Below are positions 41,005-63,898 of a stretch of DNA of 64,000 nucleotides, piece after piece (the stretch's first letter is position 1; each line of letters starts with the position of its first letter). The stretch is taken from assembly GCA_965644315.1 (NCBI GenBank), contig CBFFRQ010000069.1, positions 310,001-374,000 of the forward strand, written 5' to 3'. Both the position numbers and the translations under genes were made by a program. The notes beneath the pieces are model-generated. The model searched no databases, had not been told where the DNA came from, and saw nothing but the letters and a program-made list of their open reading frames with translations. The stretch comes from Caecitellus pseudoparvulus (taxonomy: Eukaryota; Protista; Bigyra: Bicosoecida).

Positions 41005-44000
41005 TCAGGCCATGTGGTGCTGTGCGGTGCGCCGGGCGGAAGCCAGCACGCTCCGCAGCCGGACAATGTCCTTTCGCGCAGCCTGGCCGTCCACAGCACC
41101 AGCAGTCTCGTAGCTTTCTGTGGAGGCCATGATTGAGTCAATGTGCCGGACCAGCTCGGCGGGAGTCAGCGCTGGGGTGGCTGCCCTGCCTCCCTCCGAG
41201 CTGGCCAGTGGGGAGGTGCCTGAGCCGGAAGAGGCTGTGCCTGCAGAAACCGGGCGGCTGCCCTTGAACAGCACGCGCTCCAAGTCTTTGATGCGCTTGT
41301 CGCGCTCAGTGTTCACGTCGAAGACCTTCATGAGCACCTGCCCGGACAGCGACCCCACCACGGCGCCATCCTTCACAACTGGCAGGCAAAAGGGTGCGCC
41401 GTTGCCCAGGTCGCGGCGAATGCGGTCTTGGGACTTCATGGTGCCCTCGAAGCGACTCAGGGTGTCCTTTTGCATGAGCTTGAAGATCTCTTCTCGTGCC
41501 TCGTCGAACAGCCGCACGTGCTGCAGCAAGCCGCCGGAGTGGCGCATGTGCATCTTGGGCAGCGGCGCAGAGCCAGATGTGCTGCTGCCCTTGCTGTCCT
41601 TGGAGCTGGACTGCATGAAAGGGGCCAGCAGGGACACGGTGGACGTGATGTGGTCCCCCATGTCCACCTCTCCGTCCGCTGACACCGTGACAGCCGTCTC
41701 CTCCTTCTTGCTCACCACCGCGAACATGTGCGCCCACACATCCTCTGCCGACAGCTTGCGGAAGGCAGCCATGCTCTTTTTCAGGCGCGAAAAGTACTTG
41801 CTGGGCAAATTCACCATGCGCTCTGCAGAGTCATCCACGAACTCCGCGTACAGCGCCTCTGCACCCTTCTGGATGCGCGCCACCTCGGCGCGCACGTTGG
41901 ACTGCGCCGCCATCTCGTCCAGTCGCCCCGCAGCCACCGCCTCCACGTCCGTGGCGAGGCGGCTGTTTGTCTTCAGCATATCCTCCAGCCACTCACCTGC
42001 TTGCAGGTAGAAGTCCACGTTCTCGCGACTGCGCTCGCGGTCACAGAACGCCTGGAACGCCTTGCGCATGACCGGGTTGTTCAGCACACCATGCAGGGAC
42101 ACGTCTTCGTAGCCCTTGTCAGGGAACACTGCGATGTGGTACGCATCTCGAAGGGAGAGCTCTGAGTGCCCAACCAGCGCGCCAGATTTCTTGCGCACAG
42201 TCAGGAGGATGTGCTCACTGGCCACGTGGCCGGGGTCAGAGATGACTGGGGACACGTCCGGCACCATGCCTGTGCGCCACTCTGCCACTGTGTAGTTTGT
42301 CCCAGCCAACACGCCAGGTGTGTCTCCTCGAGGTGCATCTTTCAGCAGCCTTCGCGAGCTTCCCTGCTGCAGGGTGAGCCCCGCCGTGCGGTCTCCTTGG
42401 GCTGCTGCTTCAGCCACGGCGGCAGCGTGCTTCACAGTGCCCGTGGACGCAGCACTCTGCAGCATGTGGGAGGAGAGGCTCACGATGAACTCGTCGGACT
42501 TCGAAAACTCCCCCGTCTCACGGCCCACCTGCGATGCCAAAGTGTCCAGGCCGTCCGTGGCCACCAAGAGACTCTTCCGCTTGCCACCCTTGCCGCCTGA
42601 CGAGGCAGCAGCTGCCGCGGCACCAGCATCAGCACTCTTCACTGACCAAGAAGGCACATCCAGCCCCGCGTCGCCCGCTGCAAACTCTGCTGGTGGCAGG
42701 GGCAAGCAGTCAAACCGAAGGTACGGGATGACGATTTTGCAGGACCCGTGGTTGCGCAGCCGGGATGCCGAGTGCAAGTTCAAGAAACCAATTTCCGGTT
42801 GAAGTTCAAACAGAGCCACCACTGGGCGGTGGTCGCACAGCTTGAACTTGAAGTCACATCGATACCGCTTGCACTGCAGCGCGTCGGCACAACCGGGCTT
42901 GGAAGCCCACAGCACGCGATCAGTGTACGATGGGTTCTGATTGCGCTTGTTGATGTACTCGGTGCCACCCTTCTCAAGGCGGTACGACGGTGCAAACGTG
43001 ATGGGGTGCTCGGAGAACGTGCTGTACGCCGCCCCCGTCTCCCGGGCAATGCGCAGTTGGTCCCCCCGGATGACCGGCTCAAGCATGCCACCAGAGACAT
43101 ACTTGACCACCTTGGCGTACTCTTCCTCGCATTCGGCCTTGCCGAGATCCACGCGATAGTTCAAGTTTCCAAGCCAGATAACGTGGTGCCAGTTGTGCAG
43201 GAATTGCGGAGGCGGGGCGCGGGAGCCGGGCACTTGCATGGAGGGGTAGTCGTGGCTGCGCAGCTTCAACTGCTGACAGATCTCGGAGAAGTTGCTGTTG
43301 CGCACAGCCACCTTGTCTGTGCCCGAAGCCAGGTGGCAGTTCACAATGGCGATGTGGGTGTTGTCAGCCCATGTGAGGGCGACCGCGGCGGCACCTTTAT
43401 TGCCCCAAATGCCGCCGACGCCCGTGGCTTCAGTGTCAGTGGCGACGTTCGTGAGGAACTTAGTGATGCTCGCTCGCGCAAACACCAACGTGTGGATCTC
43501 TTGCAGAGTTACAGAGGCGACGACGACGTACTCCTCCGGAGCATATGCGATGGGCCCAGGAAGGGCCAAAGCCGCTGAGATGACACTTCGCCAGGAGTCC
43601 AACTTGGAGCACTCTTGCAACCCGATGACGTAAATGTCACACTCCTGAGGTGGCAGCCAAGTGTGCAGCTGGCTGCTTTCAGCCTCGGACAGCGCCCGCT
43701 CGTGAGAGCAGTTCAGGGTGGCGGTGCAAATGCGCAGCCTGTCTGGAACGTACCCTGCAGCTTCCAGGCCCAGCACCCGCACTGCAGAGAGCTCCACATC
43801 GGCCAGCACCAGGCGAATGAGGCCGGAAAAGCGCTCCCGCAGCGCATGTGTTGCAAACGTCACCTCCACCTCCTCTAGCATGGTGGCTGTGGGTGGGATG
43901 AAGGCTCGTGTGCGCCTGCTCGCGGACTGCCCCGCCCCAGACCCTGCTGCGGCATCCCCCGCGTCATCATATGCAACAATGAAGAGCTTTGTTGGATCGT

Positions 44001-47000
44001 GCAGAGACGACTCCAGGCGCAGGCGGGACCATTCAATGGGGTGCACCACGGCGCCCGTTGCATCGTCAAAAGCTGGTTGCCGGGTCAAAGTACGTGCCTT
44101 GCGGTCCACGATCAGCACCCGGTTGGTTGAGCCCCTGTCCAGCGTAATGGCAAAAGATGCCCGCCCAGACACAGGTTCGTACTTCTCTGCGTCGTCTGAA
44201 AACGGCAAGTCAGGCTCCAGCAAGTGCAGCAACAGGCAAAACTGCTCCCTGGTTTCAGCCGTCGCAAACTTCAACGCGTAGTCTTTGGTTTCTTTGTCAT
44301 GAAAGAGGATGTTTAGTGCCGTGGGCTCAGCTGACACGCGCTCCACTCGGGAGAGGTCCACGACGGGATATGAGTGAGTGTGCGCACCTTTGTCGTCGTA
44401 CACATTCATCTGCTGCCGGTCCATGTCCACTGCCACTGCACGGGGCTGCCACTGCCCGTAGCGATTCAGCTTCTCAACGGGAATGCGGGGTGTACAACCT
44501 GAGGGGAGCTGGGGACCCTTGGAGGTAGGGCTGCCACCGCTCGGCTGGCTGTCCTTCGCTGGAGCCCGCAGGTCGTCCAGCACTGCCCTGAACGCAGGGC
44601 TTGCCTTGAACCGCGCGTACAAGGCAGGTAGCTCCAGGACCGTCATGACCACTGCAACAGCTGCATCCAAGCAGAAGGGGGACAGTTTCATGGTGTCTGG
44701 CGAGGAGGAAGCCAGCCCAGTGAGTCGTGACACTTCCGTCGGGGGCAACAGCAAGCCAATGGCTGTGCCAGGGGACTCGGCAGACCCACAAAACTTGGCC
44801 ACAGTGACGGCAAGCTGCTGTGACAGGCCTCGGGGAACATTGGTGATGACACCACCGTCAGTGGAGACAGAAAACGCCAGCCCCGCAAACTCGTCGGCAG
44901 CTTGCAGAAACTCGCCCACAATCTTGGTGGACACGCTGACGGGCAGCTTCTGCAAGTACTTTCGCTTGTCAGCCTGTTGGATCTTCTTTGCAGAGGCGAA
45001 TGTGGGGTCCCCCGCGCCGGCTTGGCTGGGCAGCAGCTGCCCGCCTGTCGCCTGTGCAACTGCTTGGGGCAGCGGCAGGAACCCCAAGCCGTCTGCCAGG
45101 GCCGAGGCTAGCTGGCGCTTGACGCGAATGGCAGCCCCAACGTGCTGCTCAAACGCATCGCAACCCGCCTCCAGCTTGAGAAGGGCAGCGAGGGGTGGGG
45201 CAGTGCCGTGTGCAAACACTTCAAAGCGCGACAGGCCGAGGGAGTCCCCCGCGAAGGCGTACTCGATGTCTCCCCGAGTGAGCTTCACGATCACTGCAGC
45301 AGTGTCAGTAGTGAACAGCTTGAAAGGTTCGGTGCGCGAAACGGCGCTTGCTCGGGGCAGCAGCGCGTCCACGCCCACTGCCGCGCCCGATGATTTCAAT
45401 TCAACAACTTCGCTGCTGCCGGACTTGGTGGCGCAGGACACGGTGCCTTGCGCAACGACGTAGGCAACCAGTTCGCCGTCCTCAAAGTCTGAAATCACGG
45501 TTCCGCCCCCCACTGACGTGTACTTGATCCGCTTTGTCAGCCGGTTCAGCTGCCCTTCCGTCATGGTGCTGAACAAAGGACTCTTGAGTTTCTGCACCGA
45601 AGACGCTTGCCGGGAGGCAACGTGCGCTTGGATGTTGTCACGCAACACAGGGATGGCTTCCAGCATGGCGTGGAACGCTGAGCGGTGCTGCACCATGACC
45701 AGCGAGTCCCGGCGAGCGACTACAGAAGCGGTGGCTGGCACGTCCTGCAGCAGTCCGATTTCACCGAAGAACCCCCCCGTGGAATCTTGGAACACCTGCC
45801 GCCCACGCACCGTGACGGCATACTCGCCATGAATCATGACGTAGAACGCATCACCGCGTGAGCCCTCAGACACGATGGTGGTCCCGGCCGTGTATGCCAG
45901 CACAGTGAACCTTCGTGCGGCTGACGCAATGTCCTTCTTCGGGATCTCCCGAAAGAAAGGCACCCGTTGGAGGAACAGGGGAAGCAGCTCCTCTGTGTAC
46001 CTTGTGAGCAGCCGGCGCTTCTTTGACACCATCCAAGAATCCCCCAGCTCCCGCACCATGTCTGCCGCGTCCAGCACCAGGGCATGGCAGCCGCCGATGG
46101 AGGCGATGACAGAGCGGGTCACGCTGGTCTCCTCTGTCGGCTCCACTGCAGGCGAGAAGGAAGCAAAAAGTGCAGGCAGGCGACAAAGCAGTGCCAGAAC
46201 GTGCAGCTGGCCAGGACGCTGCGACTCACAAGGTGCGTCTTCGAAGGTTGGGTCGTCATACGCGACGCCAGTTGTGGGGACAATGTAACACCCCGGAGCA
46301 AGCAGAGCATCTACACAGTGAGTTGTCCCAGGCTGCGGGGTTTTGGCGAGGAAGGGCCAACGTGAGCGCGAGGCATGCAGTGCCGTGCGGTGCTTGCGCT
46401 CAGTAGGCGTGGGGTGCCGCGCCTCCATCTCACCTCACAGTGCTGCACACAGATCTCCTCATCGGCCCCTGGATCAACCTTAAACAATGCTGTCACGCCA
46501 GCACACAAGATGAACATGCACTGCTCATAGTTTCCCTGCAAGCGCGAGGGCGTGACACAGTGGGGAGAGGGGGTGTCGCGGCGACCGCGTTGCAGTGTGG
46601 TCAACTGCAAACCTTCGCCAGGGGCAGGCGTGCCCACCGCACAGTAAAGGTCTGTAGGCCACAGCACGCACCTCTTCGAACATTTTTGACTCCGGTGTCA
46701 GCGTCTTCAGCTTGAAGTGCTTTGCAAGCGCGGTGGCTTCATCAGGCGTCATGTCGGCCAGCAAAGGCACGGCGCTCCGCAGGAACTTGTGAGTGAGGTA
46801 TTGCTTTGCATACTTGCTGCGCAGTTCTTCTTTTGCCCGACTTAGCAAGTCATCGCTTGGTGCTTCGTACACGGACCCACTGCGCCCAGCTTGTGCGACA
46901 CCAGGTGCCAGGCCGAGAGCAGCCAGCTCATCTTCGTCCACGCCAGCTGGTGTCTCCCACGACGATGCCTGCGTCAGCCCATGAAACCAGTACCAATTGC

Positions 47001-47121
47001 CGGACTCATCGTCGAATGCTTGCTGCCAATTGGGGTCGCTCCAAGAAGCCTGACCCGACTGCTCATTGAACCAGTAGGTCTTGCCTGACTCTGGGTCCAC
47101 GCCTTCGCTCCAGTCTGCCAT
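41005..47121 (-). CDS. Multidomain signalling protein: WW-WW, cNMP-binding domains, PH-like, inositol polyphosphate 5-phosphatase, C2-like, RGS; spliced at the 5' end
   Basis: WW: WSEGVDPESGKTYWFN...SW, twice. cNMP: IVSEGSRGDAFYV...FFGEIGLL...ATASV. 5-phosphatase: IGLQE, GNKGA, VNCHL, WLGNLNYR, PSYTDRVLW, DHRPV. RGS: FQAFCDRERSRENVDFY...VNLP...FDEAREEIFKLMQKDTLSRF. Confidence 0.88.
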
Positions 47122-47296
47122 GGCGGGGCTGATGTCGCAGCGACCCCGTGCACCAAGCGCCAGCAAGTGGACGCTGAGCGGGCCTTCCTTCAGCTGCACT
47201 GCGAATTGCAGAGTACTAGGAGTTCGGGCAGCTCTGCGGCAGTGAATGCGATGGCTGCATTGTGTGGCACACGCTCAAATGCTCGGCGCAGGCAGT

Positions 47297-49069
47297 TTAC
47301 GCAGCCTCCTCTGTTGGGATGGAGTACTTGATGTTCGTGTTCACCGCCAGCACGTGCTCATCAATCACGATGGCCGGGTCAATGAAGCTCAATCCACCCA
47401 GAGACGGCAGTGGGAAGCCCAGCCCACCCAGCCCGTTCAACAGGCTCTTCGCTGTGGGCAGCACCAGGTCCACCAGTGTCTGGATGAAGCCAACACTCAG
47501 CTCGCCAATGGAGCTGCGCAGCACCTTCAAGTTCAAGTCCAACGCCGTCACGTGGAACTTCAACACGGGCGCCACCTGCCCAGTCGCGTTGGAGTGCTGC
47601 ATGGACAGGCTGACACTGAGGCCCGCCACCATGTCAGCGCCCAGCGTGAAGACAGGCAAGCTGCCGCCATACGAGGACACACCACGCAGGGAGCCACTGG
47701 CGCCGGCCAGCACACCAAAGTCAAGCGCCACAGGCAGGTGTGCCTGCAGGCCGCTGGCCTTGCTGGCCGTGATGCTGGGCGTCGTGGACTTGTCGAAGGT
47801 GACGTTCAGGCTCATGGCACGGTTGGGGTACTTGGCGGGCAGCTGGGGCAGGCCCAAGTCTGCCCACTTGCTCGTGTTCAGAGGCAGGGGGAACAGGCGC
47901 GGCTTGTTGGCGGGCGTGTAGAAGCTGTCCAATGCACCGTTGGTGTAGGCAGTCCACAGGGCACAGGACAGTGTAGCGGGGGACAGCTGCGCCTGCAGCA
48001 TGTAGTGCTCGGGTGCCACGATGGGGGGCATGGGCAGGGTGGCGATGGGGCACTTGGCATGGCGCAGGGCGTCAGTGGCGGCGAGGTCGAAGGCCAGGAC
48101 GGCGGTGGCAGCGGAGCCGGCACCCTGCACGCCCAGGACATCGGTGGCCAGGGAGAAATCCGTGACGGACAATCCACCGCCAAGGTGCATGTATGAGGGC
48201 AGCTTCGACAGCACTTTTGCAGCTGCATCGTTCACAGCGGTCTGCACTTTGCCTCGGACGGCCTTCTCGATGGCGTCCTTCAAAATGCCCTTGAGCAGGT
48301 CAACCAAGATGTTGTACAGCCAAGAAGCGTCGCCGTGGAACTTGATATCGAAGTGGCCGAAAGACAAGTTGGCGCCTGTACAGTCAACATGAGGCTTGGC
48401 AGCATCGACGCTGATTTCCACGGTAACGCTAGCAGTAGTGTCACCCGGGCTGATATCAATAGATCCAGTGGATGAGATGTGCGGCCAGTGGTTCTTGCGC
48501 CAGTGGTAGTCCATCGTAATCTCTGCGACGTGCGGGATGTGCCGTGGGGTTGATGCTCCCGAGCCCCACACCTGAGGACTCACTCGCCGAGTCCAGTCCG
48601 TTAATGCCACCAGCAACGGTTGACGGCGCAGCCAGGGTCAGGTCAATGTCATTGATAACAAGGCCAGAAGCCTGCGGCAAAGAAAACAACCAGCGATCGA
48701 TGAGCGGCTCGCGTCTCAGAAGGTGTGACTGCACTCACGCGGATGTTGGTCAGCTCCAGAGTCACATGGCCAATAGGAGTGTCCAGGTCGGGCTGGGTGA
48801 TGGATGGGATAGTCTGTGGCAGCGCAAGACGGCTTGAAGTGAAACATTCTGGGTCCTGGGGTACAGTGTGTTGGTCAGGTGCACTGCACTTGGCAGCAAC
48901 GCACGCTGAACTGGGCGAGGATCGCGTTCAGCTCAGGCAGCACAGCGTTCTTAAACTCCACAAGCCCCCCCTCCGACACACCCGTCGCGAAGCCGTACGC
49001 CGCCCTCCCCGATTGCAAGCAGCATGCAGCTGCAGCTGCAGCCAGCAGCACTGCACTTGCCCCTCGCAT
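47297..49069 (-). CDS. BPI/LBP (TULIP)-family secreted lipid-binding protein, copy A (4 exons)
   Basis: Signal peptide MRGASAVLLAAAAA; VSEGGLVEFK; TIPSI...TPIGHVTLELTNIR; DIKFHGDASWLYNILVDLLKGILK; C-terminal GFPLP. Confidence 0.85.
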
Positions 49070-50322
49070 GGTGAGCGCGGTGCAAAGTGCGCGGGCACGT
49101 GTGGTTCAAAAACCACGCCACGAATGGACTGCCGGTTCAAGTGGTTGTTCAATGTTGAGGAAGCGAGTGTGTGAGACGGTGCGTGTTTGAGCACGGCAGC
49201 GAAGTGCGCCAGAGCAGCATGTCGCAGCGTGGCCTGGCTGGGGCGTCATCGTGGGAGAGCCGGGAGGCACGGTGGATGCAGCGGCGTCGGGCGCAGTTGG
49301 GTCTGGGTGAGTGCAGCATTGGTGAGTGGTGGTGTAGTGGCATGCATGGCTCACGAGCCTCTCCTTGCTGCGCGGTTCAGGGGGTGGAGATCAGGCCAGG
49401 CAAAGCAGGTGAGTGCGGTTGGGCGTTGTTTTCCGCACCACGCCGTGATTGGCGTGTGGCCCGGCCAGGCGCAGCATTGCCTTGGGGCTGGAGCACAAGC
49501 TTCCACCGTGTCTATGTGCAGGTCTGGGATGACTGGCACGGGTGTGTCTCGCGGGTCTCCGATGAAGACGTCCCGTGCTGTGAGTGGTTTGGTGCCCGGT
49601 GCCGTTGGAGGTGAGCCAGCGATGGCCAGCTCACCTGGCGGGAGCACGGTGATGTCTGCGTCTGAGCTGCGCGGCATGCGGCGTCGTGCGGGGGGGAGGA
49701 GCAGTGGCCGGGGCAAGTACCGCATGGAGCTGGAGGGTGGTGGTGTGGGTGGCGGTGGTGCGCGGGGCCCCAGTCAGGGACATGTGCGGAGTGCCACGGC
49801 ACCGAGTGCGGGCAGGTGGGAGCAGGGCGGTGAGCGGGGCTTCTTCGACTACTTCTTCAACCCCCGCCCAGGCGGCGGGACGCCCATGCGTGACGGGCGT
49901 GGGAACGTCGTGGCAGACTTGCGTGGGGCACTGTCTGTGCAAGGCGGTGTGGAGCGTGAGGGTGAGCAGCCGCAAGGAGTGAGCGTTCACGAGCTGGAAG
50001 GCGCTGCCGCTGCCAGTGTTGCAGGCGGTGGTGGTGGTGCTGAGGCTGGTGGGGGGCTGGGGGTTGGTGTGGGCGGGGCGGCCCGTGTGGCTGATGGGAG
50101 TGTGGGTGCCATGCCAGGTGGTGCAGGGCAGTCCATGGGTGACATGGTGCATGCCCGCACGATTGAGCGACTGCAGCGGGAGGCCGATGATGCAGATCGG
50201 GGGCGGCGAGAGGCTGAGGAGGAGTTGCGGAGTGTGCGTGCTCAGTTGTCAACTGCGATCAGTTTGTTGGAGGAGTACCGCGCCGAGTACGGCCCACTGC
50301 CGGCGAAGTAGGGCGGCGGGGA
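48907..50322. repeat. ~1.4-kb duplicated block, copy 1 (BPI exon 1, divergent intergenic region, neighbour gene)
   Basis: Near-identical to 56110-57525 at a constant offset of 7203 bp. Confidence 0.95.
49622..50311 (+). CDS. Hypothetical Gly-rich protein with C-terminal coiled coil, copy 1
   Basis: MASSPGG...FFDYFFNPRPGGGTPMRDGRGNVV...IERLQREADD...LEEYRAEYGPLPAK; ORF intact in both copies. Confidence 0.7.
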   Translation: MASSPGGSTVMSASELRGMRRRAGGRSSGRGKYRMELEGGGVGGGGARGPSQGHVRSATAPSAGRWEQGGERGFFDYFFNPRPGGGTPMRDGRGNVVADLRGALSVQGGVEREGEQPQGVSVHELEGAAAASVAGGGGGAEAGGGLGVGVGGAARVADGSVGAMPGGAGQSMGDMVHARTIERLQREADDADRGRREAEEELRSVRAQLSTAISLLEEYRAEYGPLPAK

Positions 50323-50392: not shown

Positions 50393-52276
50393 TTAGAAAG
50401 AGATGGTGATGTTCGTGTTCACCGCCAGCACGTGCTCGTTTATCACGATAGCCGGATTCTGGAAAGCCATGCCCCCCAGAGACGGCAGTGGGAAGCCCAG
50501 CCCACCCAGCCCGTTCAACAGGCTCTTCGCTGTGGGCAGCACCAGGTCCACCAGTGTCTGGATGAAGCCAACACTCAGCTCGCCAATGGAGCTGCGCAGC
50601 ACCTTCAAGTTCAAGTCCAACGCCGTCACGTGGAACTTCAACACGGGCGCCACCTGCCCAGTCGCGTTGGAGTGCTGCATGGACAGGCTGACACTGAGGC
50701 CCGCCACCATGTCAGCGCCCAGCGTGAAGACAGGCAAGCTGCCGCCATACGAGGACACACCACGCAGGGAGCCACTGGCGCCGGCCAGCACACCAAAGTC
50801 AAGCGCCACAGGCAGGTGTGCCTGCAGGCCGCTGGCCTTGCTGGCCGTGATGCTGGGCGTCGTGGACTTGTCGAAGGTGACGTTCAGGCTCATGGCACGG
50901 TTGGGGTACTTGGCGGGCAGCTGGGGCAGGCCCAAGTCTGCCCACTTGCTCGTGTTCAGAGGCAGGGGGAACAGGCGCGGCTTGTTGGCGGGCGTGTAGA
51001 AGCTGTCCAATGCACCGTTGGTGTAGGCAGTCCACAGGGCACAGGACAGTGTGGCGGGGGACAGCTGCGCCTGCAGCATGTAGTGCTCGGGTGCCACGAT
51101 GGGGGGCATGGGCAGGGTGGCGATGGGGCACTTGGCATGGCGCAGGGCGTCAGTGGCGGCGAGGTCGAAGGCCAGGACGGCGGTGGCAGCGGAGCCGGCA
51201 CCCTGCACACCCAGGACATCGGTGGCCAGGGAGAAGTCAGTGCGTGATGCCCCACCGCCAAGGTGCATGTGCGAGGGCAGCTTTGCGAAGACCTTCGCTG
51301 TGGCGGCGTTCACAGCGGTTTGCACTTTGCCTCGGACAGCCTTCTCGATGGACTTGCGCAGGGTGCCCTTGAGCAGGCCAGTGACGATGTTGAGCAGCCA
51401 CGACAGGGAGCCGTGGAACTTGATCTTGAACTTGTCAAATGACACGTTCACCCCTGAGCACGAGGCGTGTGGCTTGCCACCCGACGCGCTGATGGCGACG
51501 GTGACGCCAGCGGTGGTTGTGCCGGGGGTGATGTCGATGGAACCGTGCATCTTGATATGGGGCCAGTGGCTCTTTCGAGCATGGTAGTCCATCGAAATCT
51601 CTGCGGAGTAGGCGTTGGCATGAGCTTGACTGCCGTTGACTGCAGCCTGGACGCCTCCCCTCCTGGACACCAGAGCCGGTGGCGAAGTACGAAGCAGCGC
51701 ACGTACTGGCATTGTGCAAGCCTGCGATAGACCCCCCCACAGTGCCAGGGGCAGTCATGACGAGGTTCGCATTGTCGATGTGCAGCCCGCTAGCCTGTGG
51801 ACATGGGCACCAGTGGACCGCGTGGGGTAGGCAGGGGGGACGGGCACTGTTGCTGGCTGGGTGGTGTCAGGTCAAGTGCAGTGCGGCAGTTCACTTGCAC
51901 GCACCCTGATGTTTGAAAGCGTGAGGTCGACGTGTCCAATGGGTGTCTTGACATGCTCTTTGATGTCAGGGATGGTCTGCACGCCGAGTGGGCCGTGTCA
52001 GTGCGAGAGTGCGCCCGGAAGCAAGGATCAATGCGGGCGGGAGCGGGGTGCCCCGGCGCACGCCCCAGCGCGGTGCCGGAGTGTGCCGGCACGTTGGCGA
52101 CGTACGGCAAACTGGGCCAGCGCTGCGTTCAGCTCTGGTAGCACTGCATTCTTAAAGGAGTCAAGGCCTGCCTTGGACACGCCGGTGGCGAAGCCGTAGT
52201 TGGCAGCAGCGACGGGCTGAAGCAGGAGAGCAGCAGCAGCTGCGGTGGCCACGAGGGCCAATGAGACAACTCGCAT
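50393..52276 (-). CDS. BPI/LBP-family protein, copy B (4 exons)
   Basis: MRVVSLALV leader; exons TIPDIKEHVKTPIGHVDLTLSNIR, ASGLHIDNANLV and KISMDYHARKSHWPHIKMHG; same intron positions as copy A. Confidence 0.85.
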
Positions 52277-52485
52277 TGTGGTGCTGAGTATGATATTGAG
52301 ATGAAGAGAAACCGTTTGTGATCCGTTGTGTGTTTTCTCGTTTCGGTGAGATTGAACTGTGTCCTGAGGTCTCAGCACGGAACAGCTCGGAACCTTGATC
52401 GGTGATATGTTCAATAATGAGAGTCGGGACAAACCATACCTAAGTAAGCCATGCATTCTACCTACGTATACCACATCAATGAGCA

Positions 52486-54369
52486 TCACAGGGTGATGGT
52501 GATGTTCGTGTTCACCGCCAGCACGTGCTCGTTTATCACGATGGCTGGGTTCTGGAAAGCCATGCCCCCCAGAGACGGCAGTGGGAAGCCCAGCCCACCC
52601 AGCCCGTTCAACAGGCTCTTCGCTGTGGGCAGCACCAGGTCCACCAGTGTCTGGATGAAGCCAACACTCAGCTCGCCAATGGAGCTGCGCAGCACCTTCA
52701 AGTTCAAGTCCAACGCCGTCACGTGGAACTTCAACACGGGCGCCACCTGCCCAGTCGCGTTGGAGTGCTGCATGGACAGGCTGACACTGAGGCCCGCCAC
52801 CATGTCAGCGCCCAGCGTGAAGACAGGCAAGCTGCCGCCATACGAGGACACACCACGCAGGGAGCCACTGGCGCCGGCCAGCACACCAAAGTCAAGCGCC
52901 ACAGGCAGGTGTGCCTGCAGGCCGCTGGCCTTGCTGGCCGTGATGCTGGGCGTCGTGGACTTGTCGAAGGTGACGTTCAGGCTCATGGCGCGGTTGGGGT
53001 ACTTGGCGGGCAGCTGGGGCAGGCCCAAGTCTGCCCACTTGCTCGTGTTCAGGGGCAGGGGGAACAGGCGCGGCTTGTTGGCGGGCGTGTAGAAGCTGTC
53101 CAATGCACCGTTGGTGTAGGCAGTCCACAGGGCACAGGACAGTGTGGCGGGGGACAGCTGCGCCTGCAGCATGTAGTGCTCGGGTGCCACGATGGGGGGC
53201 ATGGGCAGGGTGGCGATGGGGCACTTGGCATGGCGCAGGGCGTCAGTGGCGGCGAGGTCGAAGGCCAGGACGGCGGTGGCAGCGGAGCCGGCACCCTGCA
53301 CGCCCAGGACATCGGTGGCCAGGGAATAGTCGGTACCAGACAGACCATTACCAAGGTGCATGTGCGAGGGCAGCTTTGCGAAGACCTTCGCTGTGGCGGC
53401 GTTCACAGCGGTTTGCACTTTGCCTTGGACAGCCTTCTCGATGGACTTGCGCAGGGTGCCCTTGAGCAGGCCAGTGACGATGTTGAGCAGCCACGACAGG
53501 GAGCCGTGGAACTTGATCTTGAACTTGTCAAATGACACGTTCACCCCTGAGCACGAGGCGTGTGGCTTGCCGCCCGACGCGCTGATGGTGACGGTGACGC
53601 CAGCGGTGGTTGTGCCGGGGGTGATGTCGATGGAACCATGAAGCTTCGTGTGAGGCCAGTGACTGCGTCTGACATGGTAGTCCATCGAAATCTCTGCGGA
53701 GGAGGCGTTGGCATGAGCTTGACTGCCGTTGACTGCAGCCTGGGCGCCTCCCCTCCTGGACACCAGAGCCGGTGGCGAAGTACGAAGCAGCGCACGTACT
53801 GGCATTGTGCAAGCCTGCGATGGACCCCCCCACAGTGCCAGGGGCAGTCATGACGAGGTTCGCATTGTCGATGTGCAGCCCGCTAGCCTGTGGACATGGG
53901 CACCAGTGGACCGCGTGAGGTGAGCAGGGGGGACGGGCACTGTTGCTGGCTGGGTGGTGTCAGGTCAAGTGCAGTGCGGCAGTTCACTTGCACGCACCCT
54001 GATGTTTGAAAGCGTGAGGTCGACGTGTCCAATGGGTGTCTTGACATGCTCTTTGATGTCAGGGATGGTCTGCGCGCCGAGTGGGCCGTGTCAGTGCGAG
54101 AGTGCGCCCGGAAGCAAGGATCAATGCGGGCGGGAGCGGGGTGCCCCGGCGCACGCCCCAGCGCGGTGCCGGAGTGTGCCGGCACGTTGGCGACGTACGG
54201 CAAACTGGGCCAGCGCTGCGTTCAGCTCTGGTAGCACTGCATTCTTGAAGGAGTCAAGGCCTGCCTTGGACACGCCGGTGGCGAAGCCGTAGTTGGCAGC
54301 AGCGACGGGCTGAAGCAGGAGAGCAGCAGCAGCTGCGGTGGCCACGAAGGCCAAGGAGACAACTCGCAT
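52486..54369 (-). CDS. BPI/LBP-family protein, copy C (4 exons)
   Basis: Tandem duplicate of copy B at offset 2093, introns included; MRVVSLAFV leader. Confidence 0.85.
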
Positions 54370-54512: not shown

Positions 54513-56272
54513 CTACAGGGTGATGGTGATGTTCGTGTTCACCGCCAGCACGTGCTCATCAATCACGATGGCCGGGTTCTGGAATGCCATGCCCCCCAGA
54601 GACGGCAGTGGGAAGCCCAGCCCACCCAGCCCGTTCAACAGGCTCTTCGCAGTGGGCAGCACCAGGTCCACCAGTGTCTGGATGAAGCCAACACTCAGCT
54701 CGCCAATGGAGCTGCGCAGCACCTTCAAGTTCAAGTCCAACGCCGTCACGTGGAACTTCAACACGGGCGCCACCTGCCCAGTCGCGTTGGAGTGCTGCAT
54801 GGACAGGCTGACACTGAGGCCCGCCACCATGTCAGCGCCCAGCGTGAAGACAGGCAAGCTGCCGCCATACGAGGACACACCACGCAGGGAGCCACTGGCG
54901 CCGGCCAGCACACCAAAGTCAAGCGCCACAGGCAGGTGTGCCTGCAGGCCGCTGGCCTTGCTGGCCGTGATGCTGGGCGTCGTGGACTTGTCGAAGGTGA
55001 CGTTCAGGCTCATGGCACGGTTGGGGTACTTGGCGGGCAGCTGGGGCAGGCCCAAGTCTGCCCACTTGCTCGTGTTCAGAGGCAGGGGGAACAGGCGCGG
55101 CTTGTTGGCGGGCGTGTAGAAGCTGTCCAATGCACCGTTGGTGTAGGCAGTCCACAGGGCACAGGACAGTGTGGCGGGGGACAGCTGCGCCTGCAGCATG
55201 TAGTGCTCGGGTGCCACGATGGGGGGCATGGGCAGGGTGGCGATGGGGCACTTGGCATGGCGCAGGGCGTCAGTGGCGGCGAGGTCGAAGGCCAGGACGG
55301 CGGTGGCAGCGGAGCCGGCACCCTGCACACCCAGGACATCGGTGGCCAGGGAGAAGTCGGTGCGCAGACAGCCCCACCGCCAAGGTGCATGTGCGAGGGC
55401 AGCTTTGCGAAGACCTTCGCTGTGGCGGCGTTCACAGCGGTTTGCACTTTGCCTCGGACAGCCTTCTCGATGGACTTGCGCAGGGTGCCCTTGAGCAGGC
55501 CAGTGACGATGTTGAGCAGCCACGACAGGGAGCCGTGGAACTTGATCTTGAACTTGTCAAATGACACGTTCACCCCTGAGCACGAGGCGTGTGGCTTGCC
55601 ACCCGACGCGCTGATGGCGACGGTGACGCCAGCGGTGGTTGTGCCGGGGGTGATGTCGATGGAACCGTGCAGTGAGGTGTGGGGCCAGTGGCGACGTCGG
55701 ACATGGTAGTCCAAGCTTACAGCTGCGAGCGGTGAAGCTTGACTGCCTGAGAAAGATCCGCGGTCCAAGGAGTGGGGACATTTACTCACTGGTATGCTCC
55801 AGTCCGTGGATCCCACCACCGACTGTGCTGGGCGCCGTCATGACGAGGTCCGCTCCACTGATGACGAGGCCAGTTGCCTGCGGAGAAGGGAACAGAGTGC
55901 AGATTCCTTCATGCGCAGGCCAGGAGGGAGCCACAATGCAGGCATCAGCAGCTCAGCACACCTTGATGTTGGTAAGACTGATATCGACATGCCCGATTGG
56001 CGTCCCGACATCGTTAATAGTCATGTCCGGAATACTCTGCGAGGTGTGCAAGCGTGAAACGTAGGCATAACGACGGCGCATGTTCGCGAAGTGAGCTGGG
56101 CGCTTACAGTGAACTGGGCGAGGATCGCGTTCAGCTCAGGCAGCACAGCGTTCTTAAACTCCACAAGCCCCCCCTCCGATACACCCGTCGCGAAGCCGTA
56201 CGCCGCCCTCCCCGATTGCAAGCAGCATGCAGCTGCAGCTGCAGCCAGCAGCACTGCACTTGCCCCTCGCAT
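54513..56272 (-). CDS. BPI/LBP-family protein, copy D; apparent +2 frameshift near 55359-55375 (assembly error or pseudogene)
   Basis: Exon 1 as in copy A; unique exons 2-3; exon 4 like copy B. The frame breaks at HLGGG|...TDFS (17 nt where the paralogs have 15). Confidence 0.75.
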
Positions 56273-57525
56273 GGTGAGCGCGGTGCAAAGTGCGCGGGCA
56301 CGTGTGGTTCAAAAACCACGCCACGAATGGACTGCCGGTTCAAGCAGCTGTTCAATGTTGAGGAAGCGAGTGTGTGAGACGGTGCGTGTTTGAGCACGGC
56401 AACGAAGTGCGCCAGAGCAGCATGTCGCAGCGTGGCCTGGCTGGAGCGTCATCGTGGGAGAGCCGGGAGGCACGGTGGATGCAGCGGCGTCGGGCGCAGT
56501 TGGGCCTGGGTGAGTGCAGCATTGGTGAGTGGTGGTGTAGTGGCATGCATGGCTCATGGGCCTCTCCTTGCTGCGCGGTTCAGGGGGTGGAGATCAGGCC
56601 AGGCAAAGCAGGTGAGTGCGGTTGGGCGTTGTTTTCCGCACCACGCCGTGATTGGCGTGTGGCCCGGCCAGGCGCAGCATTGCCTTGGGGCTGGAGCACA
56701 AGCTTCCACCGTGTCTGTGTGCAGGTCTGGGATGACTGGCACGGGTGTGTCTCGCGGGTCTCCGATGAAGACGTCCCGTGCTGTGAGTGGTTTGGTGCCC
56801 GGTGCCGTTGGAGGTGAGCCAGCGATGGCCAGCTCACCTGGTGGGAGCACGGTGATGTCTGCGTCTGAGCTGCGCGGCATGCGGCATCGTGCGGGGGGGA
56901 GGAGCAGTGGCCGGGGCAAGTACCGCATGGAGCTGGAGGGTGGTGGTGTGGGTGGCAGTGGTGCGCGGGGCCCCAGTCAGGTACATGTGCGGAGTGCCAC
57001 GGCACCAAGTGCGGGCAGGTGGGAGCAGGGCGGTGAGCGGGGCTTCTTCGACTACTTCTTCAACCCCCGCCCAGGCGGCGGGACGCCCATGCGTGACGGG
57101 CGTGGGAACGTCGTGGCAGACTTGCGTGGGGCACTGTCTGTGCAAGGCGGTGTGGAGCGTGAGGATGAGCAGCCGCAAGGAGTGAGCGTTCACGAGCTGG
57201 AAGGCGCTGCCGCTGCCAGTGTTGCAGGCGGTGGTGGTGGTGCTGAGGCTGGTGGGGGGCTGGGGGTTGGTGTGGGCGGGGCGGCCCGTGTGGCTGATGG
57301 GAGTGTGGGTGCCATGCCAGGTGGTGCAGGGCAGTCCATGGGTGACATGGTGCATGCCCGCACGATTGAGCGACTGCAGCGGGAGGCCGACGATGCAGAT
57401 CGGGGGCGGCGTGAGGCTGAGGAGGAGTTGCGGAGTGTGCGTGCTCAGTTGTCAACTGCGATCAGTTTGTTGGAGGAGTATCGCGCCGAGTACGGCCCTC
57501 TGCCGGCGAAGTAGGGCGGCGGGGA
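56110..57525. repeat. ~1.4-kb duplicated block, copy 2
   Basis: Near-identical to 48907-50322. Confidence 0.95.
56825..57514 (+). CDS. Hypothetical Gly-rich/coiled-coil protein, copy 2
   Basis: Differs from copy 1 by only a few substitutions. Confidence 0.7.
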   Translation: MASSPGGSTVMSASELRGMRHRAGGRSSGRGKYRMELEGGGVGGSGARGPSQVHVRSATAPSAGRWEQGGERGFFDYFFNPRPGGGTPMRDGRGNVVADLRGALSVQGGVEREDEQPQGVSVHELEGAAAASVAGGGGGAEAGGGLGVGVGGAARVADGSVGAMPGGAGQSMGDMVHARTIERLQREADDADRGRREAEEELRSVRAQLSTAISLLEEYRAEYGPLPAK

Positions 57526-58630: not shown

Positions 58631-61600
58631 CTACCCTGGCTGGAGGAGGGAGCCTCGCCGACCAGTCGTAGCTTGCCGAAGCAGCCTAGAAAATGATGCC
58701 ATGCCTTCAGCTGGTGTTGTTGATGGCTGGTGAGGAAGAGGTGTCGTGTGGGTGCTCATGGGGCGCGTGCAAGTGCCGGGAAACCTGCCGTCTACGGCAG
58801 AGTGCATGTTCCGCCCCTCCCACCAGCCCGAGCTGTCTTTGTCCCAAACCCACACGACATCGCCGACATCCAGGTCAACTTCATCGTCTCTGGAAGCACT
58901 GAAGTGTGTCACTGCACGCACGTATTCCCCGAGTGCCTTGCTTTGCACTCCGTGCTGAGCCGGGGTGTCATCAGAGCTGCCGGAGCGTGTGAGAGCCAGG
59001 TTCCACGCAGACTCTCCGAGGGCTAAGAGAGCAGACCGCATGCTGTCTGTCGTTTGTAACGAATACGAGTAGCTCGGTGCTGCGCCTGGGGTTCGAGCTG
59101 CGATATCGTTCAAAACCCCCCTTGCCTCAGTGGACAAGGAGGCAGGCTCGAGTGCTCCATGCTCCACGCTGAAGCTGCGGGGGCTGTCCCCACTTGTGGC
59201 TGTCGACGTTGTGGGGTGAGCTGACATTTGCTCAAAGGGATCGGAGCTGCACTGTGTCTTTCCATTGACCAGCCTCTGCCACTGGCCCGCAGGTGGCACC
59301 CATGACCAGCATTCTCCAAGGGCTCCGGTGAGCCCTGGAGCTGCGATGTGGAATCCAGGGTGCGACAGCACCGCTGATGGAACCCACCCAACCTTGTCGA
59401 CCGCATGTGTGCGATCAAGTACCAAAGTCCATGTTAAGTGAAGAGGTCGCTGTGTCCAGTCACCCTTGGTGACCGGCTTTCCGCAAGGGGCGTCAAAAGC
59501 AACAAGAATTCTATCACGCACATGCAGGGGAAGGTCGGAAAGCTTGCTCCAACGTGCAGGCAGTCCGGTTTGGCTCTGGTCAAGCGAAGGCAGCAAGCCC
59601 ACAAGCTCTGACATGGGGATGGTCGCCGGCTGATGGAGGCGCACCATGCTCCACCCTACGCCATCCTGGCGAAGGACTGAAACGATGTCCCCTGGGACAA
59701 CGTGCAGCTCTGTTGGCGATCGCGCAAAGTACGGCCGTTGCACACTGACACTCTCACAACCAGGGGCACTCCAAATGGTTGTGCTTGCAGCTGAAGCAGG
59801 GGTAAACAAGCCCGCCTCACCCAGAGGCACGCCGTCGGAGGATGTGGGGGACGCCACGGTAGTGTCCCTCGCTCCAGGGTATGCCAGGCGCTCGGGAGAC
59901 TGAAGGCGGCTTGGAGGCGAGATGCTTAGGTCTGGGTTGCCCGCTTCCAGAATGGGAGTCGGCTGAGCAGACGAGAGCGAGGACAATGTGCTGCAAGCGG
60001 CGCTGTGAGTCACGAGGTGCCCCTCTGTCAACAAGCGGCCATCCAAGGCGTTTGTGGCAAGGTTGTGGGCGCTGGACCCGAAGGCGAGTTGGACTGCGCC
60101 ATCGACAGGGTTTGAAGTGGACACTGTCAGCGCAAAGAACTGCGGGGGTCTCTTGAAGGTGGGCACGCGTGGTTGGGGAGGAGCGTACGATGGCCCGCCG
60201 ATGACTTTGCTAGCTTGTCGTGCAGCTTGGATGATGGCTGTGGAACGAAGAACGTCTTTGACACCTCGTCTGTGTAGTGTTGACAGGTCGTACCAGGGGT
60301 CCAGCAATGCGCGAGAGGAAGGGGAGAGCAAGTTCTTCGTGCTGTGTGGCTTGCCGACCGCCACGGTACGCCGACGAACGCGTGTGGTTATGGAAGGCCA
60401 GGGTCTTCCTGAAACAAACGGTTTGGACTCGTCGCTCAGCAAAGATGATCTCTTGTTGGGCCCTGATGAGAGTTTGGAGTGAGAAAAAGTCACCATTGAG
60501 TGCTTTCTGCGAGAGTGACGTGGCGAACCAGCGACAGGTAGGGCTATATCGCTGCTTGAGTCACGAATGTTGGGGAAGAGGTGCCCCACCTGGAGGGCCT
60601 GCGAAGGAGGAGAGGGGGAGGGGGGGGCAGTGGGCAACTGTGGTGCGTTTGAGGGGTGTGTGGCGTGTACTCGGCGGTGCCCCTGAAAGCAGGCTGTGAA
60701 TCGGCGCCACCAAGAAGTGGGCTGAGACGCACCTCTTGGCTGGGTCCCCGTCCCTGAGCGCCGTGCTTTCAGTGGTGTCAGTTTTGCTGCTGAGGGTCGA
60801 GTAGCTTGCTGCAAGCCTGTCGCTAGCATGGGGCTCGTGGAAGCGGGCTCAGTGCCAGGTCGTGCATGAGACTGGAGGGTATCACGGCCGGGCGGTCCAA
60901 CAAATCCTCGAGAGCCGGTGGAATAGTCAGAATCATCACTGTCTTCTTCGGCCAACGTGGTGACATCGCTGCTTGGTGCACGGCCTCCCTTCGAAGGCGG
61001 CGCATCTGGCACTGCACGGGTTGCCAGGCGCTGCATGAATGCCCGCTGCTCTCGCGTCCTGCCTTGGTCATCCTTGGCACTGGCTCGCAAGATGGCTTGC
61101 TGTTCTTCAAATTCTTTGTTCCAAGCCTTGTTTCGGTCAAGCTGGGGGTCAAAGGCATCCCACCCGCCACGCTTAGCCGCCAAAGCGACACGGTAGGCAC
61201 CCTCCTCCGTTTCATATTCAGTTCCTTGTGCAGCCGAAACCATTGTGTGCATGGCTTCCTGCATGCCATCACCGTCAACCACTTCTTCATCTACAGAGTC
61301 CAAGAGGGCCGACAGGCCGGCCATGTCGAGGGAGATGCTCAAGCCAGTTCCCTGCAGGGCAGCCCAGTCCTCTTTTGACAAGGAACCCTCCGCAAGGTCC
61401 ACGTGCGACCCATGCGTCGTGCTTGTTGGCGGCGACTCCATGTGCACACTCGCAGTGGGCGACTTTTGCAGGCCATTCTTCGTGTCAAACGCAGAGGCGC
61501 CCGAGTGGGCGGAGACAGGAGCCCGGGGTGGGCTGTCCCCTTGCCCGCCAAGAATTGTCACGGCCCGCAAGAAGGCACGCGCCTTGGATGTCCCTGCAGA

Positions 61601-63898
61601 GGAGGCTGTGCGCAGGGGCCGTGCCGACATGTCTGTTCCAGATGCGATGGACAAGGGGCTGAGATGGTCGGCAGTGGATGCTTGGCGGACCCAGATGGTC
61701 GCATTCTGCAGCATCATTCGAGCGTGGCCGATGGGCACTTCTCCTGGCCAGCCCTCTCGTACCATGAGTTCAAAGGCAAATGCCAGAAGTGCCCCTCGGT
61801 GGCGAGAATCGACCAAGAAGTTGTCTGCAAGATGAAAGTCCCCCTGGGCAGCGTGGCTGATGGCGGTGCGGGCTTGACCTAGGCGGTCCATCCACTCAAA
61901 CCACTGCTGCCTGGCCCAAACGATGGGGTTGTACTCCTCTCCAGGCTCTTCGTATGCATCTACAGCAGTGGTGGCTCCGGCATCTGTAATGTCGGCAGGG
62001 GTCAGCACTGTGTCCACAGGCAACAAGAAGGACGAGCCATTCGCGTTGGTGAGGCGCACAGTCTGAGCTGCCCGGCGCTGCACAGCAACTGGGCTGCGCA
62101 GGGCTGTGGGTGTGCCAGCGACTGACACAGAAAGTGAGGCAAAAATGCCCGACGCGCCCGCAGTCGGCAACTGAGACCCGAAGCCAGACGGCTGCGACAG
62201 CGCAGAGATGCCTGAAATGCGCTGCCCTGACACACTCCCGAGCGGTCCCCGGGAGCCAGCAGTTGTGACCGGACTGGGCACCAGACTCCCTGGTACTTCT
62301 CGCAGTGCTGCAAGGGTTCGACGAGTCTCTTGGTCCCAAGAAGCCCTCTCGGCCGCTGCGCTCGTGCTGAGTGCAGCCCTCCACTCGGCTTCGATGGTCT
62401 CCTGGGGAATGCTGCCCAGGTCGCTGGCTGCCGCGGGCACTGGCATGCACTCTGCATCCACAGCGCTTAAATCAGCGTCCTCTTGACCAGGGTCCTCCAG
62501 CTCTCGAGGCGTGGCTTGGACGCGGTAAGAGGTCAGGCTCAGCTCCCTCGCCCAGGGGGAGCCCGTGCCGAGAGAGAACCGCGTCTGGGCTCCGCTCACA
62601 AAGAGGGGGGTGGCCCCACCGCCACCAACGCTCCGCCGGCGCCCACGGCCATTTTGAGGCAGGTCGGCACTGGACACAACAGGCACCTCCCTGCCCATGG
62701 CCAGCACGTCAGCTCTCGGCAGCCTGCCGCGCCTGATGAAGGGGTGGCTCAGCAGCTCCGACACCGGCGCCCGCACTCGTGGAACAGGGGTCAGGCACCT
62801 ACTCAAAAAGTGCTGCAGCTCCGGGGATGTCATCGGTGGCAGGCGCTTGGACAGGTCAATTAAGACTGCCGAGCGCTCGGAGTCAGGCGTGGAAGCTGTG
62901 CTGGCATCTTGAGGTGGAAGGCTGGCAATTCGGCGGAGGTCCGGCAAATTCACAGGGCCCAGTGGTGCTGGCCCTGGAAACATGCTCAGACTCCGCACTT
63001 TCGCCATGCCCTTGGGGGGCAGTGACGCGCGAGGTGTCCTGTGGCTGCGGGGGGGCAGCCCACCCGTCGTGGCGGAGCGCCCCGGAGCATCCGCGACTGG
63101 CGTGCTTGCACGCTGAGGCGGGTCTTGATCCACGGATGACTCACGGGCCAAGGTGTGAGACGCCCCTTCCTCTGACTGGGGGGCGCGAATGGCTGGGAGC
63201 GGGGATGGCATGCTGCCGCCAGCGCCAGCCGCTTCTTGCGGCGGCCCGCCCAGGCGAAGGGTGCTCCCTGACTGTGATGACTGCTGATCCCGAGGACTGC
63301 CAGAGGACGTGCTGCCCGTATCTTCCGCCTGTGCACTTTGTGTGGCTTCGTCGGGGCATGGGATGGAGAGGGCGGGGTTTCCCAGCAACATCTGCAGCGC
63401 CATGGCACCCACTGCCCACGTGTCCACTTTCCTGCTCAGCTTGACCTTGCCACTGGCCGTTGTCAGGCGCAAGCGAGCTGCTGAGCCAAACCCGGTGATT
63501 TTCACAGTACCTGACCCGGACAGGAGGGCGCTGTCGCAGGACAAGGAACCATGCACGACGGAGCAGCTGTGCAGGTGGGCCAGGCCGCTGAGGATGTGCC
63601 GGGTGTACCGAGCAACGACGTCTTCTGACAGCCGGCCGAAGCGCGTGAGCAGAGATCGCAGAGTGCCACCAGGCGCATACTCAGTGAACATGCGGAACAC
63701 TTTCGGCTGCTGCTCCACACCAAGGTATGAGATAACGTGCCGATGCCTCGACTCTCGCAGGATGCGGCGCTCCATCTGGGTGGCCCTGATGGCATCCGAC
63801 ATGCTGACACGGGGGACGCTTGGTGATGACACCCCGCCACTGGATGCATCCTGCGAAGGAGGTGGCTGCAAGCCAAGGTGATCACTGCCGAGAGGCAC
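58631..63898 (-). CDS. STE/MEKK-like (pseudo)kinase domain with two C-terminal SH3 domains; 5' end probably incomplete
   Basis: HRHVISYLG, MFTEYAPGGTL, YTRHILSGLAHLH, DTWAVG, FLSRCL...LLSHPF. SH3 motifs: FSASRDDEVDLDVGDVV...SGWWEG...GRFP and YFARSPTELHVVPGDIV. Confidence 0.85.
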   Translation of the reverse strand: MPLGSDHLGLQPPPSQDASSGGVSSPSVPRVSMSDAIRATQMERRILRESRHRHVISYLGVEQQPKVFRMFTEYAPGGTLRSLLTRFGRLSEDVVARYTRHILSGLAHLHSCSVVHGSLSCDSALLSGSGTVKITGFGSAARLRLTTASGKVKLSRKVDTWAVGAMALQMLLGNPALSIPCPDEATQSAQAEDTGSTSSGSPRDQQSSQSGSTLRLGGPPQEAAGAGGSMPSPLPAIRAPQSEEGASHTLARESSVDQDPPQRASTPVADAPGRSATTGGLPPRSHRTPRASLPPKGMAKVRSLSMFPGPAPLGPVNLPDLRRIASLPPQDASTASTPDSERSAVLIDLSKRLPPMTSPELQHFLSRCLTPVPRVRAPVSELLSHPFIRRGRLPRADVLAMGREVPVVSSADLPQNGRGRRRSVGGGGATPLFVSGAQTRFSLGTGSPWARELSLTSYRVQATPRELEDPGQEDADLSAVDAECMPVPAAASDLGSIPQETIEAEWRAALSTSAAAERASWDQETRRTLAALREVPGSLVPSPVTTAGSRGPLGSVSGQRISGISALSQPSGFGSQLPTAGASGIFASLSVSVAGTPTALRSPVAVQRRAAQTVRLTNANGSSFLLPVDTVLTPADITDAGATTAVDAYEEPGEEYNPIVWARQQWFEWMDRLGQARTAISHAAQGDFHLADNFLVDSRHRGALLAFAFELMVREGWPGEVPIGHARMMLQNATIWVRQASTADHLSPLSIASGTDMSARPLRTASSAGTSKARAFLRAVTILGGQGDSPPRAPVSAHSGASAFDTKNGLQKSPTASVHMESPPTSTTHGSHVDLAEGSLSKEDWAALQGTGLSISLDMAGLSALLDSVDEEVVDGDGMQEAMHTMVSAAQGTEYETEEGAYRVALAAKRGGWDAFDPQLDRNKAWNKEFEEQQAILRASAKDDQGRTREQRAFMQRLATRAVPDAPPSKGGRAPSSDVTTLAEEDSDDSDYSTGSRGFVGPPGRDTLQSHARPGTEPASTSPMLATGLQQATRPSAAKLTPLKARRSGTGTQPRGASQPTSWWRRFTACFQGHRRVHATHPSNAPQLPTAPPSPSPPSQALQVGHLFPNIRDSSSDIALPVAGSPRHSRRKHSMVTFSHSKLSSGPNKRSSLLSDESKPFVSGRPWPSITTRVRRRTVAVGKPHSTKNLLSPSSRALLDPWYDLSTLHRRGVKDVLRSTAIIQAARQASKVIGGPSYAPPQPRVPTFKRPPQFFALTVSTSNPVDGAVQLAFGSSAHNLATNALDGRLLTEGHLVTHSAACSTLSSLSSAQPTPILEAGNPDLSISPPSRLQSPERLAYPGARDTTVASPTSSDGVPLGEAGLFTPASAASTTIWSAPGCESVSVQRPYFARSPTELHVVPGDIVSVLRQDGVGWSMVRLHQPATIPMSELVGLLPSLDQSQTGLPARWSKLSDLPLHVRDRILVAFDAPCGKPVTKGDWTQRPLHLTWTLVLDRTHAVDKVGWVPSAVLSHPGFHIAAPGLTGALGECWSWVPPAGQWQRLVNGKTQCSSDPFEQMSAHPTTSTATSGDSPRSFSVEHGALEPASLSTEARGVLNDIAARTPGAAPSYSYSLQTTDSMRSALLALGESAWNLALTRSGSSDDTPAQHGVQSKALGEYVRAVTHFSASRDDEVDLDVGDVVWVWDKDSSGWWEGRNMHSAVDGRFPGTCTRPMSTHTTPLPHQPSTTPAEGMASFSRLLRQATTGRRGSLLQPG

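Follow-up and report, generated by a model that had tools for sequence, protein, structure and literature searches.

Two narrow islands of divergence at predicted hairpin loops in a tandem LBP/BPI gene array

The LBP/BPI array and its neighbourhood

The window (the whole stretch of DNA analysed, 64,000 nucleotides) is part of contig C69 of a eukaryotic assembly of 30.6 Mb in 215 contigs. Its minus strand carries four LBP/BPI gene copies in tandem (A, B, C, and D); in every copy, four exons are separated by GT-AG introns (Table 1). The exon lengths of copy A, the positional ortholog of a gene in a related species, sum to 517 amino acids; copy B has a signal-peptide-like start. Exon 1 of copy D is nearly identical to that of A, its exons 2 and 3 are its own, and its last exon resembles that of B and C. 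The assignment to the LBP/BPI family, made in an earlier note on this DNA, was upheld by Pfam, by sequence search against the PDB, and by Foldseek. Both the N- and the C-terminal LBP_BPI_CETP domains are present, PF02886 with E=3e-13 and PF01273 with E=1e-5 on the last exon alone; the latter value lies just below the cut-off, with exons 1-3 not joined (protein searches were conducted exon by exon, not on joined spliced models).

Table 1. Positions of the gene copies, islands, and repeated blocks (window coordinates unless another locus is given)
Feature	Position	Strand	Remarks
LBP/BPI copy A	47297..49069	-	exons 49069-48905, 48813-48739, 48671-48584, 48522-47297
LBP/BPI copy B	50393..52276	-	exons 52276-52106, 51976-51905, 51794-51707, 51600-50393; 512 aa
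LBP/BPI copy C	52486..54369	-	4 exons (B + 2093); 512 aa
LBP/BPI copy D	54513..56272	-	frameshifted in island 2 as assembled
Island 1, copy A	48467..48502	-	WRKNHWPHISST; core as in the related species' genes
Island 1, copy B	51545..51580	-	last-exon codons 7-18; ARKSHWPHIKMH
Island 1, copy C	53638..53673	-	VRRSHWPHTKLH
Island 1, copy D	55667..55702	-	VRRRHWPHTSLH; codons 9 and 15 C-like, codon 16 A-like
Island 2, copy A	48155..48181	-	GGGLSVTDF; 5' edge of four-copy tract
Island 2, copy B	51233..51257	-	codons 114-122, GGGASRTDF
Island 2, copy C	53326..53350	-	GNGLSGTDY
Island 2, copy D	55353..55381	-	B-type and C-type letters mixed; two additional bases shift the frame in the assembly
Constant block, codons 123-375 of last exon	50474..51232 (B coordinates)	-	253 codons
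1416-nt block	48907..50322	no strand	repeated at 56110-57525, 98.6% identical
Fifth LBP/BPI gene	L006 (G000:C32:153764-154909)		tip WAYQLHIWPHVPYGSG; adjoins a 1-Cys peroxiredoxin gene

The constant block of the last exon shows no amino acid difference among the four copies, with identical runs of up to 704 nt. The 1416-nt block, whose second copy lies at D, contains exon 1 of A, the region upstream of it, and a plus-strand ORF; this unit of A and ORF may be the original duplication unit. The ORF itself is in divergent orientation and has 374 codons, its two copies are 98% identical, and Pfam returned no match for it. Other long ORFs lie nearby. One of 1807 codons (41005-46428) combines cyclic-nucleotide-binding, PH-like, inositol-5-phosphatase-type (Exo_endo_phos2), and RGS domains in an unusual architecture, a WW-domain ORF (46525-47199) follows copy A immediately, and a third (58631-63898) encodes a protein kinase at its N terminus and an SH3 domain at its C terminus.

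A search of the whole assembly yielded five LBP/BPI loci and no more. The fifth is a distant, single-copy paralog on another contig (31% identity). Public metagenomes hold a locus 98% identical to it (L019, L020, and L021); neither an array copy of that strain nor B, C, or D sequence from any other strain was found in the searches made for them. The related species (loci L015 and L018; ∼50% identity), which has the same gene order towards an RFC gene, contains at least three LBP/BPI paralogs, one inverted and two in tandem (L018 1-7745; L015 1-2400). These are interrupted within the tip by an intron that follows HWPH, carry one or two further introns missing from the last exon in the window, and lack the third intron of the window's genes; intron loss in the window's lineage is possible.

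Two islands and a patchwork of probable gene conversion

Copies B and C are colinear without a gap over 1,875 nt (50402-52276 and the same positions +2093) and differ at 46 positions. Of these differences, 14 fall into the 36 nt of island 1 and 13 into the 25 nt of island 2, leaving 19 (1.0%) outside both. When the B/C differences were placed at random (20,000 trials), the fullest 36-nt window held no more than eight. The hand count of 14 differences in an otherwise near-identical pair, given in the earlier note, was thus confirmed, and its four peptide strings proved correct. Its expectation of non-uniform divergence was likewise borne out by the full alignment, but not its picture of a single island: the first stands, and a second, equally dense one had been missed. 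Neither island contains a stop codon or an indel in B or C, and third positions account for 15 of the 27 differences (p=0.014). As had also been noted, island 1 carries both kinds of change, replacements in four codons (A/V, K/R, I/T, and M/L) and silent changes in five of the seven codons that encode the same residue. Each of the two peaks holds four replacements, so that these two loops contain eight of the roughly twelve residues at which the two proteins differ. The islands are also the only places where all four copies differ: D departs from both B and C in the tip codons and, to the extent that its shifted string is readable, at island 2 as well.

Synonymous change between B and C is saturated in the islands (pS 0.79-1.05, pN 0.20-0.28); dN/dS above 1 was considered and rejected, as pN is below pS. 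Identity amounts to 61% and 48% of nucleotides in islands 1 and 2, respectively (8 of 12 and 5 of 9 amino acids), which equals the level found in exons 2 and 3 between unconverted paralogs (49-69% of nucleotides). Homology between B and C begins at the ATG and stops three codons before the stop codon, and their spacers resemble each other no more than shuffled sequences do. Such unrelated flanks fit old duplicates that were homogenised later, not a recent duplication. Together with the saturated silent sites, the divergence at the level of unconverted sequence, and the conserved tip (see below), this points to the islands being old remnants spared by conversion, in line with what the earlier note had proposed. 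GC content at third codon positions, considered as a possible footprint of biased conversion, is 59% in the islands and 84% in the converted last exon; that of exons 1-3 of B and C is 67%, although these too are converted, and that of the single-copy paralog is 89%.

The sharing of sequence among the copies changes along the gene. Codons 19-113 of the last exon are common to B, C, and D, and A differs there at a third of the residues; exon 1 and 1.4 kb upstream of it are common to A and D; the introns of B and C are homogenised. Island 1 forms the 5' edge of the tract that D shares, and island 2 that of A. This patchwork would be the trace of interlocus gene conversion, judging from the distribution of shared sequence. 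Recent leakage from A or D was rejected as the source of the islands, as no identical stretch was found.

The two extra bases of copy D lie inside island 2, in a string that blends B-type and C-type letters, and reflect either a pseudogene or a consensus error, possibly an error of assembly. If B, C, and D were haplotypes or mis-polished repeats, the contrast between islands and flanks could partly stem from consensus calling. The blended string of D would fit this explanation, as would a 1-nt loss in a G run in one copy of the rDNA repeat. However, each copy has its own unrelated spacer, the islands of B and C are frame-clean and biased to third positions, copies with saturated silent sites could not have been made alike by polishing, and the related species likewise possesses a multi-copy cluster with homogenised patches. 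Assembly error is therefore plausible for the frameshift of D but not for the B/C islands, and as an account of the islands it is very unlikely. The rDNA array (G000:C81:462535-506238) has a unit of ∼8.45 kb with a short 18S of 1697 nt, whose short V4 would fit a stramenopile flagellate; that the array was resolved copy by copy suggests that long reads were used.

Placement and conservation of the tip

The AlphaFold model of the last exon of B (pLDDT 87.9) adopts the two-barrel boomerang fold (Foldseek against 1EWF/1BP1, E=6e-20, TM 0.74), and a full-length homolog (P0007) matches 1BP1 with Z=32.9. In the models, both islands fall in hairpin loops. Island 1 covers the end of one strand (residues 2-8 in the B model), a seven-residue loop (9-15), and the start of the next strand (16-25); in the model of the full-length homolog, this loop tops a long hairpin (116-136/143-166). 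A profile of 96 sequences, with mouse LBP and human BPI as references for the tip, aligns island 1 to about BPI residues 91-102 and the matching stretch of mouse LBP; relative to both, the protist tip has a 3-residue insertion. The earlier placement of the island at the LPS-binding hairpin tip therefore agrees with alignment and models, which put it at the N-terminal tip of BPI/LBP. Region 86-102, which includes R94, K95, and K99 of LBP, is the one most implicated in LPS binding (PMC4620459). At the three equivalent positions, copy A has R/K/S, B has R/K/K, C has R/R/K, and D has R/R/S. Island 2 corresponds to the loop of a short hairpin beyond the long helix of the N domain and aligns to about BPI 199-207. 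By alignment, the C135-C175 disulfide of BPI is absent from B, where a cysteine aligns to C132 and an arginine occupies the position of C175, and it is also absent from the protist profile; it marks an animal-type feature rather than the whole LBP/BPI/CETP family.

Among 98 homologs of 20-36% identity, the tip window ranks 22nd of 388 in conservation, with the motif W-x-aromatic-R/K-x3-W-P-H-x4-G. WPH is strongly conserved at the tip and defines a large protist LBP/BPI group (choanoflagellate, euglenid, and metagenomic sequences; P0005-P0156); the motif is missing from mammalian LBP/BPI. All three paralogs of the related species retain the core HWRK[ND]HWPH, their tips reading HWRKNHWPH, HWRKNHWPH, and HWRKDHWPH, which is the condition found in copy A; at the K99 position they have K, R, or E. 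Copy A is thus the conserved copy with the ancestral tip, and B, C, and D are derived. The term hypervariable, which the earlier note had chosen for the island, does not hold if it is taken to mean rapid evolution of the protein: pN is below pS, the tip is among the most conserved motifs of the family, and its core is kept in the related species. In the comparison of copy A with that species, orthologous tips are closer to each other than paralogous ones. The two tandem copies of the related species share identical C-terminal runs of 79-99 nt.

The derived residues sit at positions 7 and 17, the two ends of island 1, which should face each other across the hairpin to judge from the strand limits of the model. 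Position 7 is aromatic in 84 of the 98 homologs, but A in B and V in C and D; position 17 is D, G, or S in 90 of them, but M in B and L in C and D. The pair A/M is that of human BPI (A93 and M100), and V/L is that of mouse LBP. V/L occurs in one of the 98 homologs, A/M in none. Between B and C, the tip replacements are conservative and the charge is +3 in both; the overall charge of LBP region 86-102 has been argued to outweigh particular residues (PMC4620459).

A recent duplication followed by local hypermutation, or by a short episode of positive selection on the tip, would fit the concentration of replacements in two loops and the loss of the conserved aromatic residue in B, C, and D. Against it stand a pS about fourfold higher than pN, the lack of a targeted mutator signature, and the unalignable flanks of B and C, which make the duplication old; this scenario is extremely unlikely. 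An early adaptive change in the ancestor of B, C, and D is possible but would not explain the shape of the islands.

Selection, exchange, and barriers to conversion

The explanation that we consider probable, although far from certain, is that the islands are old divergence protected by selection in a gene-converted array. According to this scenario, A, B, C, and D would descend by old tandem duplication from an LBP/BPI gene whose start resembles a signal peptide, and interlocus gene conversion would copy sequence among them in patches: the C-terminal domain in all four, most of the N-terminal barrel in B, C, and D, the entire gene body in B and C, and exon 1 with upstream DNA in A and D. Selection would act against those conversions that erase replacement differences in the two loop-coding stretches, and the silent differences between the selected sites would hitchhike with them. 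The outcome would be a C-terminal domain that is the same in all copies, combined with surface loops particular to each, chiefly the cationic tip, the part of LBP/BPI that meets LPS. By analogy with BpiC of Dictyostelium, which permeabilises bacteria inside phagosomes (PMC10107278), the proteins probably bind or permeabilise engulfed Gram-negative bacteria, and binding may differ somewhat in each copy.

A toy conversion model was run at steady state, calibrated to the 1% background but with invented tract parameters. Under neutrality, the island was erased in 216 of 216 runs, which covered nine combinations of tract length and sensitivity to mismatches. When conversion was barred at replacement codons 7 and 17, at least 10 differences were kept in 62-80% of the runs. 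Crude as it is, the model shows how difficult it is, without selection, for a stretch of 36 nt free of gaps to stay divergent when its flanks are long and identical, and by this simulation selection, which the earlier note had named as a protector from conversion, is the likeliest cause. The island edges were not significantly tied to the replacement codons (p=0.28).

Without any selection on the loops, dense mismatches might have stopped strand exchange, or the islands might be the fringe where the tracts of A and D end. Their position at the edges of these tracts fits such a neutral barrier, small clusters of divergence can lower conversion rates (PMC3728101), and an intron like that in the tip of the related species might in the past have been an obstacle to exchange. 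Tracts would, however, also halt at those edges if the island were protected, and in the neutral model, the island still eroded when each mismatch stopped conversion with a probability of 80%. The introns of B and C, where neutral islands would be expected, are homogenised. At island 2, the letters of A have not been carried over: codons encoding the same residue differ silently in six of six cases between A and C and in four of seven between A and B. The tip intron was rejected as the cause: it occurs only in the related species and only at island 1, with none at island 2. A neutral barrier is therefore an unlikely explanation.

Alternatively, short conversions may mix loop pieces among copies or divergent alleles, as in MHC genes, generating a polymorphic repertoire rather than fixed differences. 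Incompatible splits do occur inside the 36 nt, as codons 9 and 15 group A and B against C and D, and all three bases of codon 16 group A and D against B and C; moreover, island 2 of D is a letter-level patchwork of B and C. However, recurrence among four saturated sequences can yield such splits, and the patchwork of D may come from polishing. No copy is identical to another across an island, which indicates that no recent donor is present, and no donor of the 36-mers was found elsewhere in the assembly with its five LBP/BPI loci, contrary to the micro-cassette exchange that the earlier note had offered. Such shuffling is improbable as the source of the islands, but it can coexist with selection-protected divergence. 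The DNA pattern for H-x4-HWPH also has a chance match in a non-LBP repeat on at least 11 contigs (G000 C2, C28, C43, C109, C114, C116, C134, C136, C138, C163, and C206).

A peak of divergence under gene conversion is a known signature, modelled by Teshima and Innan and found in exon 5 of the human red/green opsin genes and in RHD/RHCE (PMC3924837). As here, those paralogs are near-identical, introns included, and show a narrow peak in coding sequence, at residues plausibly tied to function, that is read as selection against conversion; in contrast, the present peaks measure no more than 36 and 25 nt, have saturated silent sites, and are common to four copies. Tigriopus GOT1p1 and GOT1p2 are likewise tightly linked paralogs with indel-free exonic islands, for which selection has been suggested but not proved, and one of their haplotypes is frameshifted, as is copy D; they encode an enzyme and come with population data, whereas the window holds pattern-binding proteins from a single assembly (PMC3728101). 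With micro-conversion in MHC and plant R genes, the array shares clustered recognition genes, short mosaics in ligand-contact loops, and possibly a broken copy, but unlike those systems, it comprises only four copies and offers neither a series of alleles nor a match between donor and recipient (PMC3924837). The boomerang fold and both Pfam domains are common to the window copies and human BPI (1BP1/1EWF), mouse LBP (4M4D), squid EsLBP1, and Dictyostelium BpiC. The cationic tip is also LBP/BPI-like, with equivalents of R94 and K95 in all copies and of K99 in B and C; the inserted three tip residues, which contain WPH, set the copies apart from the mammalian proteins. The population-genetic pattern is thus already well described, and LBP/BPI is a gene family in which it is newly seen, as a limited literature search found no published report of it in LBP/BPI genes.

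Most of the few differences between B and C lie in loops, which makes the pair a natural loop-swap experiment and one that points to residues tuning an LBP/BPI protein in a non-animal lineage. Should the two bind differently, a few residues would be linked to how a microbial grazer chooses or digests its prey, and the copies would have converged on the mammalian tip. With narrow islands, a constant C-terminal domain, and BPI/LBP-like residue pairs, the array is a good test case. It is doubtful, but conceivable, that the array forms a constant/variable repertoire of LPS receptors, in which a conversion-uniform C-terminal domain is combined with tips shuffled by micro-conversion and convergent on the BPI type (A93/M100, K99) and the LBP type (V93/L100), for binding specific to prey or lipid A. 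The BPI-type hairpin residues of B and the LBP-type residues of C and D are almost absent from other protist homologs.
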